This document shows, piece by piece, positions 2-41,039 of a stretch of DNA of 64,000 nt (positions are counted from its first letter, which is position 1; each line of letters begins with the position of its first letter). The translations under genes and the position numbers were made by a program. The DNA is from Macrostomum lignano (lineage: Eukaryota). The stretch spans positions 390,407 to 454,406 of the forward strand of contig NIVC01000218.1 of assembly GCA_002269645.1 (NCBI GenBank), in the 5' to 3' direction. A model generated the notes under the pieces. That model made no database searches and was not told the origin of the DNA. It was given only the letters and a program-made list of their open reading frames with translations.

Positions 2-148
2 TCGTGCAGGACTTGGAGATACCGATGCCTAATTAATGAGGGGGAGTACGTTTCGGATTCTGCGTGCTCGGATTGCGTCCAGTGCGCCTACGCAGCCTGC
101 GGCCGGGGAACGGCTCCGGACTCGAGTAGATACGAGTACTGCTGGTAG
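2..148 (+). CDS. 3' part of a secreted 10-Cys peptide family member (5' end lies outside the window)
   Basis: Hand translation of frame +2 gives SCRTWRYRCLINEGEYVSDSACSDCVQCAYAACGRGTAPDSSRYEYCW* (TAG 146-148). It has the same C-x6-C...CxxCxxC-x4-C-x13-C-aromatic-stop ending as the ORFs at 2654, 6696 and 40761. Confidence 0.8.
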   Translation, partial: SCRTWRYRCLINEGEYVSDSACSDCVQCAYAACGRGTAPDSSRYEYCW

Positions 149-660
149 TCGGACGCATGGACGTTAAATATCGTTATTGGAAGGCAGTTTTGATAAGATT
201 GTACGCGCCTATGGTGTCAGTTAATAACTTATTCATACTACATATATCGTGCAACATGCTGGCGTCCCCTGACGTCAGATTGCTGAACAGGATATTTGCT
301 ACAACACGACCATCAGAAAATAAATCACTAAAATAGTTGGAACAAGGAATTGAAAACAATTGATAACAGTTAGCGTTGCGATTGTGTCATAAAGTACGAG
401 CATTCGACTGTTTTTTGTTGTAAATAACTCAAGAAAGCTTGAAAAAAAGTGTAGTTGGTGGCTTCCGATCTAGGCTACTGGTAGATTAATTAATTTTAAG
501 TGAATTATTTGTAATTCTTGGCTTCAACCGCCAGTTTTCCTGTTATCCTCCCTACTAATCCTAATATAATCGATAAAAAACGAAGACAGGAATCCCAAAA
601 TAATTAATTTGTTCAAACAAAGACGTCACAATCAATAAAATAGTTAAAGTTTAATCGAGG

Positions 661-1091
661 CACCGTCGTGAAGTTGTACGCGAGGACTTTCGCTACCTCG
701 GTAGTCCTCAGTTCCTTTGCGTCGAGCGCTGACACCATTGGCTTCGACAGAAAGACTCTGAAGACTCTGAGTCATCTGAAGATACGCTTCTGAAGCGCTG
801 CTACGAGTAGCATAGCCAATCTTTCTGTATGGCGTGGATGCTGAACCAATGACTATGCCGCGAGAGAACAGTTGGACACTCACTAAAGGTCCCTTCTGTG
901 CTAATTCCCGCTGGGCATACACTATCCGGAAAAGCTGTCGACCTGATATGGCGTCGCCATACAGATGCTGCTTGAACACTGTCTTGAACACGATCGTGAC
1001 GAACGAAAACGCCTGGAGCATGCAGGTCCACATGCATCAGCCTACAAAGCAGTTGCGCCACGGCCAAATCGGTACTGCAAATCAACAGTGA
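661..1091 (+). mobile_element. degenerate non-LTR retrotransposon (RTE/L2-like) reverse-transcriptase C-terminal fragment
   Basis: Broken frames give EVVREDFRYLGS (F-x-YLGS motif) and downstream PIFLYGVDAEPMT (LLYG-x-E-x-W-like), with frameshifts and stops. Confidence 0.45.
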
Positions 1092-2405
1092 AACTTGATT
1101 TTATAACTTCATCACTACATCAATGAGCCCGTCAATCAAGTAAGAAAATTTCAGTAAAAATGTTTTCATGTTTTAGTTAGAGCAGCCTAATTTTTAGGTA
1201 TTATCCCCTGTCCTCTTGGTGTCGCCAACAGAATTTCGCACTATTGCACACTGCTCTGCCAGGGTAGGCCAGAGTAAGTTGAAGCCAGGAATTTTTACTA
1301 AGCACGTATCAAATTAAAGCTGCCCCCATGTGCACATAAGGAGAGACACTTGAGTGATTTTTCGACTGCAGGGTGTAGCTCATGGCTCGTGCTCCAGTTT
1401 TAGCAACTGTCGAGAGCTCCCACTCTTTCTGGCTCGCGCTTTTTTGGCATTCCAGGTGCACTTGGGTTATTGAGTCGTTCTGAGAGTCTAGAATGGTTAT
1501 ATAGAAAATTTTGAGGGTTTAAACACCAAGTGAAAAAAGGATATAAAGTTCCCTGACAACTGGCGTTAAATTGACAGGCAGTTAGACAAATTTTGATACA
1601 GTCAACGTACGGTTAAAACAATTCGAAACAACTCCCTGATTTGCATCAGTGTCGTAAACGGAATAGCAACTATCAAAACGTAAGTTAAAGTAAAGTCTAT
1701 GGCTAGACCTACCACTATTGCAATTCATAGCTGAAGGCTCGAGGGATTTAATCACATACCGACCTCAAACACATAGAATATCTTATTTAAACTACTTTAA
1801 TTTAGCGGGATGTATTCAGATAAATCCCGGAGCCATACTTGTATGTCTATGGTTGAAGTTGAGGATGGGGGTGTGGGGGCGAAGCCCCTGCTGGGGGTGA
1901 GGGACGAAGCCCCCACATTCTTACCATAGACAAAATTTCATTAAGAAATTTCTCGAGTCACGAAGGAAGAGAAGAGAGAAGCTCGTTTATTTAGATACAT
2001 ACAATAATCCTTGCAATATGTCCGGGAAAGTGATCGATTAAATCCCGCAAAATAAAATCTATGTCAATAACCTCCCTGAAAGTGAGCTTTAAAGTGGTTT
2101 AAGAGATTAAATCCCGAGAGCCGAAGGCATAGAATAAACCCATAGAACATCTTATACTTATTATCTATGCATTGTAACGTATTTCCAAATCGACAAGTGT
2201 CTATGGCCAAGACTATCGATTCAATTTACAAAGCCAGAGGGGCAGGCCATAGACATCTATGTCTTCTGGAAGTGAAAGCTTGAGTAGGTTTTTACAAAAC
2301 GGGGCTTACTTGAAGTCTATGCTCTTTCTTTGTCCAGTCGGTTTGGTTCCGAAGGGACAGCATTACGGTGCATCTGTTCTATTTTGACGCTTGGCCCATA
2401 CATCT

Positions 2406-2567
2406 ATTCGACGTGTAACAACGTCGCTGGCAAATATGTACCTTTACAATGCATTGAGCAAGTATCAAATGTCATGCGTCGAAGTTCATCCGACGCATGA
2501 CATCGTTATCCGTCGATGCAATAATGTAAAGGTACGTATTTGTCAAGGACGTTGTTAGACGTCGAAT
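2406..2567. repeat. 162-bp imperfect palindrome (foldback/MITE-like hairpin)
   Basis: Outer arms are ATTCGACGTGTAACAACGTCGCTGGCAAATATGTACCTTTACA versus the reverse complement of the right end, ATTCGACGTCTAACAACGTCCTTGACAAATACGTACCTTTACA. There is a perfect inner 13-bp stem ATGTCATGCGTCG/CGACGCATGACAT with a 9-nt loop. Confidence 0.8.
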
Positions 2568-2653
2568 TTCTGTACGGATAAGTTGAAGTCTCCTAAGGCA
2601 CGCTGCGTAGACTTGTATCTCAATTTTCAACAATCATATAATATTTCAACAGG

Positions 2654-2935
2654 ATGAAACCTACCGCCGGTCTTCTGGCTCCACTGCTAATCCTTCTCTG
2701 CTTGGCTATTGTCTGCTTCTCGTCGGCAAGCGGAAAAGTTGACTGCGACAGTGCAGAATACTCCTGCCCAAGCAGTTGCAAGTCTCTAGCCAGCACGGCC
2801 AATATGTGCAAAAGGATAAGGAGACACTGCGGCAAATCGCCAGACTGGTGCGCTGACTGTCTGAAATGCGCCTTCTCAGCCTGTAAAGTCGGCTCTGATC
2901 CGCAGGACTACGACATCTTCACCTATTGCTACTAG
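2654..2935 (+). CDS. secreted cysteine-rich peptide, 93 aa precursor (signal peptide + 10-Cys mature domain)
   Basis: Hydrophobic leader MKPTAGLLAPLLILLCLAIVCFSSAS. Cys spacing is C-6-C-3-C-9-C-6-C-6-C-2-C-2-C-4-C-14-C. An acceptor TTTCAACAG lies immediately before the ATG, AATAAA is at 2981, and three paralogues are in the window. Confidence 0.85.
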   Translation: MKPTAGLLAPLLILLCLAIVCFSSASGKVDCDSAEYSCPSSCKSLASTANMCKRIRRHCGKSPDWCADCLKCAFSACKVGSDPQDYDIFTYCY

Positions 2936-39058: not shown

Positions 39059-39982
39059 CTCGCATGTAGGTAATTGAGATTGTAAAACTCTTCTAACTAA
39101 TGAACAGGTGCTGACAATTGCCGTCGGATTTGAGTACAAAGTGAAATAACAAGGACTGCTGGTCGTTAGAGAGGGTACGCTGCTTGTACGTTCATCATGC
39201 TTGCGAAGCTTCGTACGTAGAAACTTCGAATACATGTATAATGCGCCGTAATTACTATATTTTTGATGAAGATATTTTAAAACGATCGCAGGTAACACCA
39301 TAGCCGGTAGAGTCACTGCATGTCCCGCAAAAATCATGTTGTGTTGAAACTGTCCGTTCTTGAAAACTTCTGATGGCGAAGTCCATCCCTTTAGAGCTTG
39401 TCGAGCAAAGCGTTTTCTCGCGTTTTGAGTTCATACTCGAATATTTCACAGAGCTGAGTTACGTGTGGCTGGCTTCCAAAAAGTTCTAAAGTTTCTTCCA
39501 TATAAAATTTTTCTATTTGTGCAGTACTATTATATGTATGAGAAAAACTGTTATTTATGATATATTTAATTCCCAAACCGTTCCGGAAATTTTAATTCCG
39601 CTGATTGAAGTTGATTAAAATATATACTGGTATTTATATTTCAAATTTAAACAACGCACACACTCGCCTTGTTTGCTTACAATTTGTTTAAATGCACTTA
39701 AAGACAGAGACGTTATTTTCGTCCCAATTCTGTGTAAGTTTTGTGTCGGGCTAAAACTAAAATAACCATCATTGATTTTGATGATAATAAATCTTCATAC
39801 TTCGAAGTAATTCAAATCACAAGCAAGCCACTTGATTCCCTAGATCGCATGAAATTAATTCGTCAATGTACTCTTATATTACTCATAAGTTGTATTGCAT
39901 TGTACTTGTAATACATTTTAAATGCAAATTTAGGGCAATGTCCTTCCAACGCATTATAATAATTTGTAATAATTGATTACAC

Positions 39983-40016
39983 CTGAGCTGAGCTGAGCTG
40001 AGCTGAGCTGAGCTGA
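39983..40016. repeat. (CTGAG)n pentanucleotide microsatellite
   Basis: About 7 perfect units. Confidence 0.9.
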
Positions 40017-40084
40017 CAGATGTGCAACCGACATCTCAGCCGCAGCTATTGCGTGGCGCATCTGAAGGCTGCGTACGTCTGTTC

Positions 40085-40530
40085 TTCCCACACATGCACT
40101 GATAAGAATGTTCTTCCCACACATGCACTGATAAGAATGTTCTTCCAAAACACTGATGGGAATGTTCTTCCAACACACTGATGGGAATGTTCTTCCAACA
40201 CATGCACTGATGGGAATGTTCTTCCAACACACTGGTGGAAATGTTCTTCCAACACACTGGTGGCAATGTCCTTCCAACGCATGCACTGATGGGAATGTTC
40301 TTCCAACACACTGGTGGGAATGTTCTTCCAACACACTGGTGGCAATGTCCTTCCAACGCATGCACTGATGGGAATGTTCTTCCAACACACTGGTGGGAAT
40401 GTTCTTCCAACACACTGGTGGGAATGTTCTTCCAACACACTGGTGGGAATGTTCTTCCAACACACTGGTGGGAATGTTCTTCCAACACACTGGTGGGAAT
40501 GTTCTTCCAACACACTGATGGGAATGTTTT
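40085..40530. repeat. 25-bp (variants ~29-bp) minisatellite CACTGGTGGGAATGTTCTTCCAACA
   Basis: Period of 25 (TCCAA at 40381 and 40406). Confidence 0.92.
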
Positions 40531-40760
40531 TACAAACGGCTTAAAAAATTCACCGCAGATAAGAATAACTCATAAAAATGAACAAAGGAAGACACAAACT
40601 CGTTTCCGCAAGTCACATGCCGTTCGTTTTATTCCCAAAGATGGAAACCAACGAAAGTTCGTCAAAATTCCTGACTTAGTGAATATCTGTGTCTGATACC
40701 TTAGCATCTTATCTTAACAAATCCAAAGAAAGAGACTCGTAAGACCATCTGCCAGAATTA

Positions 40761-41039
40761 TCAAAAGCAGTACTCGTATAAGATCATTTGCGGAGTGTTT
40801 CCAGCGTTGCAAGCCTGGTAGCTGCATCGAACACAAGCGGCGCATTCGCTAGCGGTTTTCCCACAAATGCCTTTCCAGCTCCGGCACCTGCTAACCGCTG
40901 TACCCAAGTCTTCACCGCAGTCGGTGGGGCAGGCGGAGCCCGGTTCAGAGCAGATCAAAGGGTATCCATCTACGGACAGGACGCAGACAGCAGTCAGCAG
41001 CAGAAGCGTTGGCAATAGAAGACTCTTTGTTGATGGCAT
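40761..41039 (-). CDS. secreted cysteine-rich peptide, 92 aa precursor, divergent member of the 10-Cys family
   Basis: Leader MPSTKSLLLPTLLLLTAVCVLSVDG. Spacing is C-6-C-3-C-10-C-6-C-6-C-2-C-2-C-4-C-13-C-F. The acceptor TTTAAACTCGCAG ends at 41048, and AATAAA (minus strand) is at ~40628-40633. Confidence 0.85.
   Translation of the reverse strand: MPSTKSLLLPTLLLLTAVCVLSVDGYPLICSEPGSACPTDCGEDLGTAVSRCRSWKGICGKTASECAACVRCSYQACNAGNTPQMILYEYCF

Follow-up and report, generated by a model that had tools for sequence, protein, structure and literature searches.

What are the short cysteine-rich open reading frames (ORFs) that recur in a 64-kb stretch of Macrostomum lignano DNA (contig NIVC01000218.1, positions 390,407–454,406; hereafter the window), and do their products belong to any known protein family? 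The reading favoured here, which we regard as reasonably likely, is that they are members of a tandem family of intact, transcribed genes whose products are lineage-restricted, secreted, helical ligands or effectors with five disulfides. As a lineage-specific family of secreted Cys-rich mini-proteins it is of a familiar kind; its scaffold is without detectable relative. Mini-proteins of this kind often mediate inter-organism interactions, as toxins, pheromones, seminal-fluid factors or immune effectors, and are also useful as stable scaffolds.

Exactly four family ORFs are present in the window. A six-frame search of the 64 kb with the C-terminal Cys motif C-x2-C-x2-C-x4-C-x(10-18)-C-[FYW] returned four sites, all of them within these ORFs, and tblastn among the copies gave E values of 1e-21 to 4e-5. 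No fifth copy rose above noise in tblastn over the window, and a profile hidden Markov model (HMM) run over every stop-to-stop ORF concurred. ORF listings, motif scan, tblastn and HMM scan all agree with the original prediction on four paralogues and on where they lie, and judged by their sequences the four are real paralogues of one family. The genes and their candidate processing signals are located as follows.

2–148, plus strand: 3′ part of gene C, comprising the last 48 codons and stop of a 101-residue precursor (P0007) that starts upstream of the window
319–324, plus strand: candidate AATAAA poly(A) signal, 170 nt past the gene C stop
2650–2652, plus strand: candidate CAG 3′ splice or trans-splice acceptor, 1 nt before the gene D ATG
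2654–2935, plus strand: gene D, 93-residue precursor with ten Cys; leader at about 2654–2734, mature peptide of 66 residues at 2735–2932
2981–2986, plus strand: candidate AATAAA poly(A) signal, 45 nt past the gene D stop
6686–6688, plus strand: candidate CAG acceptor, 7 nt before the gene E ATG
6696–6968, plus strand: gene E, 90-residue precursor (from the first ATG) with ten Cys and a CYY end
7079–7084, plus strand: candidate AATAAA poly(A) signal past gene E, with an ATTAAA at 7017–7022
40628–40633, minus strand: candidate AATAAA poly(A) signal, 127 nt past the gene F stop
40761–41039, minus strand: gene F, 92-residue precursor (from MPSTK) with ten Cys, on the opposite strand to D and E and about 34 kb from them
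41048–41050, minus strand: candidate CAG acceptor, 8 nt before the gene F ATG

The gene C fragment, translated in frame 2, holds seven of the ten mature Cys of P0007, and an identical full-length ORF for P0007 is found at L001:15095-15400. Most of the span originally given for the whole finding, 2–41039, has nothing to do with the family: it takes in an acyl-CoA oxidase gene and roughly 15 kb of satellite.

Two further contig copies of the region (segments L001–L005) were scanned with the family HMM. Across the three contig copies the array has seven types, A–G, in the order A-B-C-D-E ... G-F; with its neighbours it reads PH-domain gene, A, B, C, D, E, kinase fragment, acyl-CoA oxidase gene, satellites, G, F. 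The window starts inside C and holds C in part, D, E and F, without G. There are 16 intact copies of the seven types on the three contigs, and all copies of types A–F are intact. The window is 99 % identical to NIVC01001750.1 over the D–E region and about 96–98 % identical to NIVC01000363.1 in the best-aligned blocks, and the flanks of the array are unique and collinear between contigs. Exhaustive profile searching revealed no other family locus in the searchable M. lignano proteome.

Type G is found on one contig only (NIVC01000363.1, L003:14137-14412) and is unannotated. No G copy is present in the window, and neither the window nor L004 has a stretch corresponding to L003:12795-14668, the segment that carries G. 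A 25-bp satellite occupies window positions 40106–40535, directly downstream of gene F, and also L003:10711-12794 and 14669-14978, so that on NIVC01000363.1 two blocks of it flank a 1.9-kb unique segment carrying G. The arrangement suggests that this family member was gained or lost by recombination between the 25-bp blocks; type G may also be decaying.

The types, their precursor lengths and their locus tags are given below.

Type A: 99 residues; BOX15_Mlig022385 and BOX15_Mlig009623
Type B: 99 residues; BOX15_Mlig028384
Type C: 101 residues
Type D: 93 residues; BOX15_Mlig003226
Type E: 90 residues; BOX15_Mlig003746
Type F: 92 residues; BOX15_Mlig033514
Type G: 92 residues

The products of D and F match deposited M. 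lignano proteins exactly, and that of E differs by one residue from PAA64445.1 (BOX15_Mlig003746g1). The D copy on contig NIVC01000363.1 corresponds to PAA84745.1 (BOX15_Mlig003226g3, 96 % identical), and the F product clusters with PAA64450.1 and PAA84741.1 (BOX15_Mlig033514g1 and g3). GenBank names every tagged member (A, B, D, E and F) ‘hypothetical protein’; the automatic UniRef/UniProt name is ‘ShKT domain-containing protein’ for A, D and F and ‘Uncharacterized protein’ for B and E. Gene C is intact on two contigs (L001:15095-15400 and L002:7212-7586) and unannotated in GenBank, there being no called gene for P0007 at its contigs; gene E on NIVC01000363.1 (L002:14053-14394) is likewise intact and uncalled. 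The family is therefore under-represented in the public protein set. The sequences are public and uncharacterized, and are described in no paper found; general literature searches returned only adhesion and seminal-fluid papers without a link to a ten-Cys family. The description of the family as unrecognized is right in that no curated family matched. It is wrong in that the public databases already contained members, three types having been given an automatic ShKT name, an assignment that was not reproduced here.

GenBank annotation of this assembly is the filtered transcriptome Mlig_RNA_3_7_DV1.v1.coregenes, which is derived from RNA-seq (PMC5730564). Because the gene models derive only from RNA-seq, the annotated members are transcribed. 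An absence of transcripts, named beforehand as a result that would speak for non-functional copies, is not what the annotated types display.

All seven types have a pyrimidine-rich stretch that ends in a CAG 1–8 nt before the ATG, and an AATAAA or ATTAAA 45–204 nt past the stop. The coding sequence is uninterrupted in each gene, so the term ‘single-exon’ is apt for the coding sequence only. In M. lignano, spliced-leader (SL) trans-splicing affects 38.8 % of genes, and multi-gene precursors make up about 7 % of transcripts (PMC5730564). Given how frequent both are in this species, a shared precursor may give rise to the mRNAs of the co-oriented A–E genes. Upstream of gene F, a 17-bp satellite (AGCAAACACATCCGGTT, 22 copies, 96 % matches) at 41153–41522 begins about 114 nt from the ATG and leaves hardly any unique sequence in which a promoter could lie. 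Between D and E, a 21-bp minisatellite (GCGCCAAAATGAGTGCCTGCG) at 5613–5810 creates long artefactual ORFs on both strands (5498–6014); a second short array of it lies beyond gene F at 43349–43460.

The Cys framework of D is C-6-C-3-C-9-C-6-C-6-C-2-C-2-C-4-C-14-C-Y. E and F share it with loops of 10 for 9 and 13 for 14, ending in C-Y-Y and C-F, respectively, and the partial copy of gene C displays the last seven Cys with a Cys5–Cys6 loop of 12 residues rather than 6. A Pro follows Cys2 in all three complete window copies, and an Ala before Cys9 and a Y-C-aromatic end are found in all four copies. This spacing, originally called invariant, describes the three complete window copies accurately but not the family as a whole. 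Types A and C are without Cys3 and have a Cys four residues after Cys1 instead (full-length gene C begins C-3-C-5-C, with no Cys at the Cys3 position). Type B is left with eight Cys, without the relocated Cys3 equivalent and without Cys8 (CVQSAY); it is intact on three contigs, and its L001 and L002 copies differ only synonymously at the DNA level. Type G is without Cys3 and Cys5 and ends C-N-C-C, two C-terminal Cys having been gained. The ‘fixed’ Y-C-aromatic end likewise applies to the four window copies and breaks down outside the window, where type A ends in EYCR or DYCK and one F copy in YCL.

Beneath this variation, 7 of the 10 framework positions are invariant across nine sequences, against a mean column identity of 46 %. 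The core motif C-[AS]-x-C-[LV]-x-C-[AS]-[FY]-x-A-C-x-x-G-x-x-P is kept (in D and E the Pro is shifted by one residue), and the loops have diverged to about 30 % identity. Cys3 (or its relocated equivalent) probably pairs with Cys8, the best hint of this being that type B, which is intact and annotated, is without either. The relocated Cys3 of A and C, the eight-Cys type B and the rearranged type G provide ready material for establishing disulfide connectivity.

The signal peptide proposed for the complete copies is supported by a heuristic check. Leaders of all seven types have a hydrophobic core, with a Kyte–Doolittle 11-residue maximum of 2.6–3.6, and small residues stand at −3/−1 of the assumed cleavage site in six types (VSA/D, VTA/K, VGA/N, ASG/K, VDG/Y and ADA/I, the stroke marking the site). 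In type E a small-residue cleavage site (TIG/T or GTS/L) lies a few residues upstream of the assumed boundary. The mature peptides would be 66–74 residues long, with a net charge of −1 to +1 for A–F and +3 for G. Read from the sequences, neither a conserved dibasic processing site nor a C-terminal Gly is present in them.

AlphaFold2 was run on D and F with alignments of 6 and 7 sequences. The two models had predicted local distance difference test (pLDDT) scores of 72.8 and 76.4 and a predicted template modelling (pTM) score of about 0.6, and contain the same three helices, in line with the original description of the peptides as probably helical. The predicted helices are 14–15 residues long. 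Cys1–3 fall in an N-terminal coil, Cys4 and Cys5 in helix 1, seven residues apart, Cys6, Cys7 and Cys8 in helix 2, which ends at Cys9, and Cys10 in helix 3. The mature protein would contain five disulfides and form a compact three-helix bundle with the N-terminal coil pinned onto the helices. The Cys5–Cys6 segment (6–12 residues) corresponds to the predicted loop between helices 1 and 2, which would explain how it tolerates the six-residue insertion of types A–C. Helical periodicity in the models sets Cys6 and Cys9 on one face, so Cys5–Cys6 and Cys4–Cys9 hairpin staples between the helices are plausible.

Selection was assessed by Nei–Gojobori counts between contig copies and, for paralogues, by the ratio of nonsynonymous to synonymous rates (dN/dS), only for pairs with unsaturated synonymous sites. 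Pooled differences between contig copies are 13 synonymous and 20 nonsynonymous, the corresponding ratio of proportions (pN/pS) being about 0.44, and whole-gene dN/dS between paralogues is 0.30–0.62. No Cys codon is changed between contig copies, so that the lack of purifying selection on Cys codons, which had been put forward as a sign of non-functional copies, is not observed. The contig copies of gene F differ by 7–8 nonsynonymous and 0 synonymous changes, a result that is not significant (binomial P of about 0.15, with about 23 % synonymous sites). As this is the sole excess, the proposal that the family is under diversifying selection finds no support. The pattern is one of moderate or relaxed purifying selection, with a conserved scaffold and fast-evolving loops.

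Searched exhaustively with the HMMER profile, 1.84 billion protein cluster representatives yielded only M. lignano family members and one spurious match, P0009 (3173 residues), a PPR-repeat protein in which no single stretch matched. The recovery of M. lignano members only bears out the proposal of a lineage-restricted paralogous family. Pfam scans of the four precursors and nine mature sequences at E ≤ 10 gave no family beyond sub-threshold noise, to which Dicty_CAD (E = 0.054) and Siva (E = 7.8) were assigned. A sequence profile search of the PDB gave no significant match, the best being the Zn2Cys6 clusters of GAL4 and LAC9 (E = 0.11–0.45). A Zn2Cys6 DNA-binding domain was rejected, its best E value being 0.11, with no match to Pfam Zn_clus and with a secretory leader present; this match and that to lactoferricin (E = 0.8) were set aside as chance Cys spacing. 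Foldseek, which is weak on tiny disulfide-rich folds, aligned both AlphaFold2 models only to unrelated helical fragments in the PDB (E > 2). Pfam, PDB sequences and Foldseek all agree with the original failure to place the peptides, and the ten-Cys scaffold is without a detectable sequence or structural relative in these searches. The family would on that account be a candidate new disulfide-rich fold.

The leader, the predicted disulfide-bonded helical core, the variable loops, near-neutral charge, tandem expansion with copy-number variation and lineage restriction together fit a ligand or effector. On this reading the mature protein, discharged from gland cells, would work outside the cell as a stable binding ligand or effector; it would not be a conserved hormone, an enzyme or a peptide that lyses membranes, and its specificity would be set by the variable N-terminal, Cys5–Cys6 and Cys9–Cys10 loops. 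An inter-organism role, in which the ligand would act on a mating partner, a microbe or a predator, is suggested by the family's confinement to one lineage, by its tandem expansion and by the fact that the contig copies differ in whether they carry G.

Several observations weigh against the ligand or effector reading or narrow it. Other Macrostomum species are represented mostly by transcriptomes outside the searched databases, so ‘M. lignano only’ may mean ‘Macrostomum only’. The AlphaFold2 models are of only moderate confidence and were built from alignments of so few sequences. A clean Cys3–Cys8 pairing is at odds with the Cys pattern of type G, unless this type is in decay or has rearranged disulfides. 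The UniProt ShKT label means that one profile method sees a resemblance. Finally, six gene IDs and five conserved peptide strings are absent from the main texts of the searchable literature, and the six gene IDs are absent from the searched supplements of three M. lignano expression papers, PMC5816591, PMC7336406 and PMC5977470 and from the compiled table in PMC7336406 of transcripts tested by in situ hybridization (ISH).

Of the more specific explanations, the one that survives best is that the peptides belong to the seminal fluid or to other secretions of the reproductive tract, pass to the partner and evolve fast under sexual selection. We consider this possible, but less likely than not. 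M. lignano has 76 prostate-limited transcripts, with signal peptides in 38 of the 65 that have a predictable ORF (PMC5977470); it is rich in lineage-specific secreted prostate transcripts without homologues, and the present family is itself lineage-restricted, tandemly expanded and variable in copy number. The nonsynonymous changes between the gene F copies point the same way. However, the overall dN/dS is below 1, and the gene IDs do not appear among the compiled ISH-tested reproductive transcripts or in the other searched supplements. Given the many orphan secreted prostate transcripts of this species (PMC5977470), a reproductive role, in seminal fluid or the female tract, would by analogy be somewhat likelier than a defensive one.

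A bolder proposal, put forward only tentatively, is that a new five-disulfide three-helix fold arose within Macrostomorpha and serves partner-manipulating or recognition ligands, seminal-fluid or pheromone-like, with paralogue-specific loops tuning receptor specificity. If this were true, types A, C and B, with disulfides moved or lost, would record a scaffold in the course of evolving. M. lignano is a convenient species in which to study the family, RNA interference, transgenesis, in situ hybridization and mating assays being routine.

Defence peptides of the epidermis, rhabdite glands or mucus, antimicrobial or directed at predators, form a rather unlikely alternative. Small, secreted, disulfide-stabilized, lineage-specific families are common among invertebrate defence peptides, and the present family is all of these and multi-copy. 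However, a mature net charge of −1 to +1 in types A–F is unlike that of most membrane-active antimicrobial peptides and argues against the cationic antimicrobial type, and nothing resembling macins, defensins or another known antimicrobial fold came out of the Pfam, PDB and Foldseek searches.

That the peptides are divergent ShKT-domain proteins, with a six-Cys ShK-toxin-like domain and two extra disulfides, and act as ion-channel blockers or modulators in the manner of other ShKT peptides, is improbable. The suggestion draws on the automatic UniProt name of A, D and F, on the first four Cys, whose spacing (C-6-C-3-C-9/10-C, read from the sequences) is close to the C-8-C-4-C-10-C of ShK, and on the occurrence of ShKT peptides in flatworms, as in chain ShKT-Ts1 of PDB 8sed, which is of cestode (Taenia) origin. 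Against it, the defining C-terminal C-x3-C-x2-C is absent, the spacing after Cys4 being x6-C-x6-C-x2-C-x2-C-x4-C, and the ten-Cys family does not fit the six-Cys pattern tested, C-x(6-8)-C-x(4-7)-C-x(9-12)-C-x3-C-x2-C. Pfam ShK (PF01549) matched none of nine members at E ≤ 10, ShK-type chains were absent from the PDB profile results at E ≤ 10, and Foldseek with the two moderate-confidence models found no ShK or CRISP-type structure. An hhalign comparison of the family profile with six sea-anemone ShK toxins (of whose sequences ShK alone was verified, against 1roo) gave a probability of 0.1 % over one aligned column; a protein-database search with a concatenated ShK-type query returned only four close sea-anemone toxins and so gave no broader ShKT profile. 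The name is also missing from B and from E. As E has the same spacing, the restriction of the name to A, D and F suggests a match that is driven by Cys and lies close to the threshold; its source is probably PROSITE PS51670. With the Cys pattern, Pfam, hhalign and the fold search all without support, the family is not filed under ShKT, and the public name of these entries calls for caution.

The idea that the ORFs are non-functional, whether by chance, as decaying pseudogenes or as part of a repeat or transposable element, is prompted by the satellite-rich region and by type G, with its single contig copy and rearranged Cys, and is highly improbable, being largely refuted for A–F by the intactness of every copy, dN/dS below 1, unchanged Cys codons, RNA-seq-derived gene models, conserved acceptor and poly(A) signals and unique, collinear flanks.

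The favoured ligand or effector genes lie in a window unusually dense in tandem repeats. The neighbouring features that are unrelated to the peptide family, and the principal repeats, are as follows; the first two are expected from 99 % collinearity with L005.

8950–9390 (approximate), minus strand: 144-residue protein-kinase fragment
About 10570–15870 and beyond, minus strand: 665-residue acyl-CoA oxidase gene (ACOX domains), whose introns contain several minisatellites (12913–13528, 14172–14898)
16485–17141: 35-bp minisatellite, 19 copies
24130–38398: 14.3-kb satellite with an 18-bp unit (TGCTATCTGGGGGATGCT), about 793 copies, 90 % matches
47419–48239: 22-bp minisatellite, 37 copies
55298–56102: array related to the 18-bp satellite, in reverse-complement orientation
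56175–59057: 23-bp minisatellite, 126 copies

The 18-bp satellite accounts for the extreme GC and AT skew at 24–40 kb; it is present in both other contig copies (L003 and L004) and is much shorter there.

Comparison with known systems places the family by its likenesses and its differences. The Zn2Cys6 cluster of GAL4 and LAC9 shares the C-x6-C-x6-C-x2-C spacing over about 30 residues; it is, however, a fungal nuclear zinc-binding DNA-binding domain, whereas the M. lignano peptides have secretory leaders and four more Cys. ShKT domains (PF01549, PS51670; ShK, BgK and the CRISP C-terminal domain) are likewise small, secreted, disulfide-rich and partly helical and resemble the family in the first four Cys, yet they have six Cys, paired C1-C6, C2-C4 and C3-C5, and short helical turns where the M. 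lignano family has ten Cys and longer predicted helices. The putative seminal-fluid proteins Mlig-pro1-76 come from the same species, and many are short, carry a signal peptide and are without homologues outside the genus (PMC5977470); no Mlig-pro transcript was matched to the ten-Cys family, and the gene IDs are absent from the ISH tables.

Helical secreted proteins with several disulfides include the saposin-like ‘macro-conotoxins’ (Mu8.1, con-ikot-ikot), Aplysia attractin and the Euplotes pheromones. The macro-conotoxins and helical water-borne pheromones differ from the present family in Cys pattern, and the family resembles no PDB entry in sequence or by Foldseek. The resemblance lies only in the way of working: extracellular ligands of 40–90 residues, near-neutral or acidic and lineage-specific, whose helices are stapled by three to five or more disulfides.

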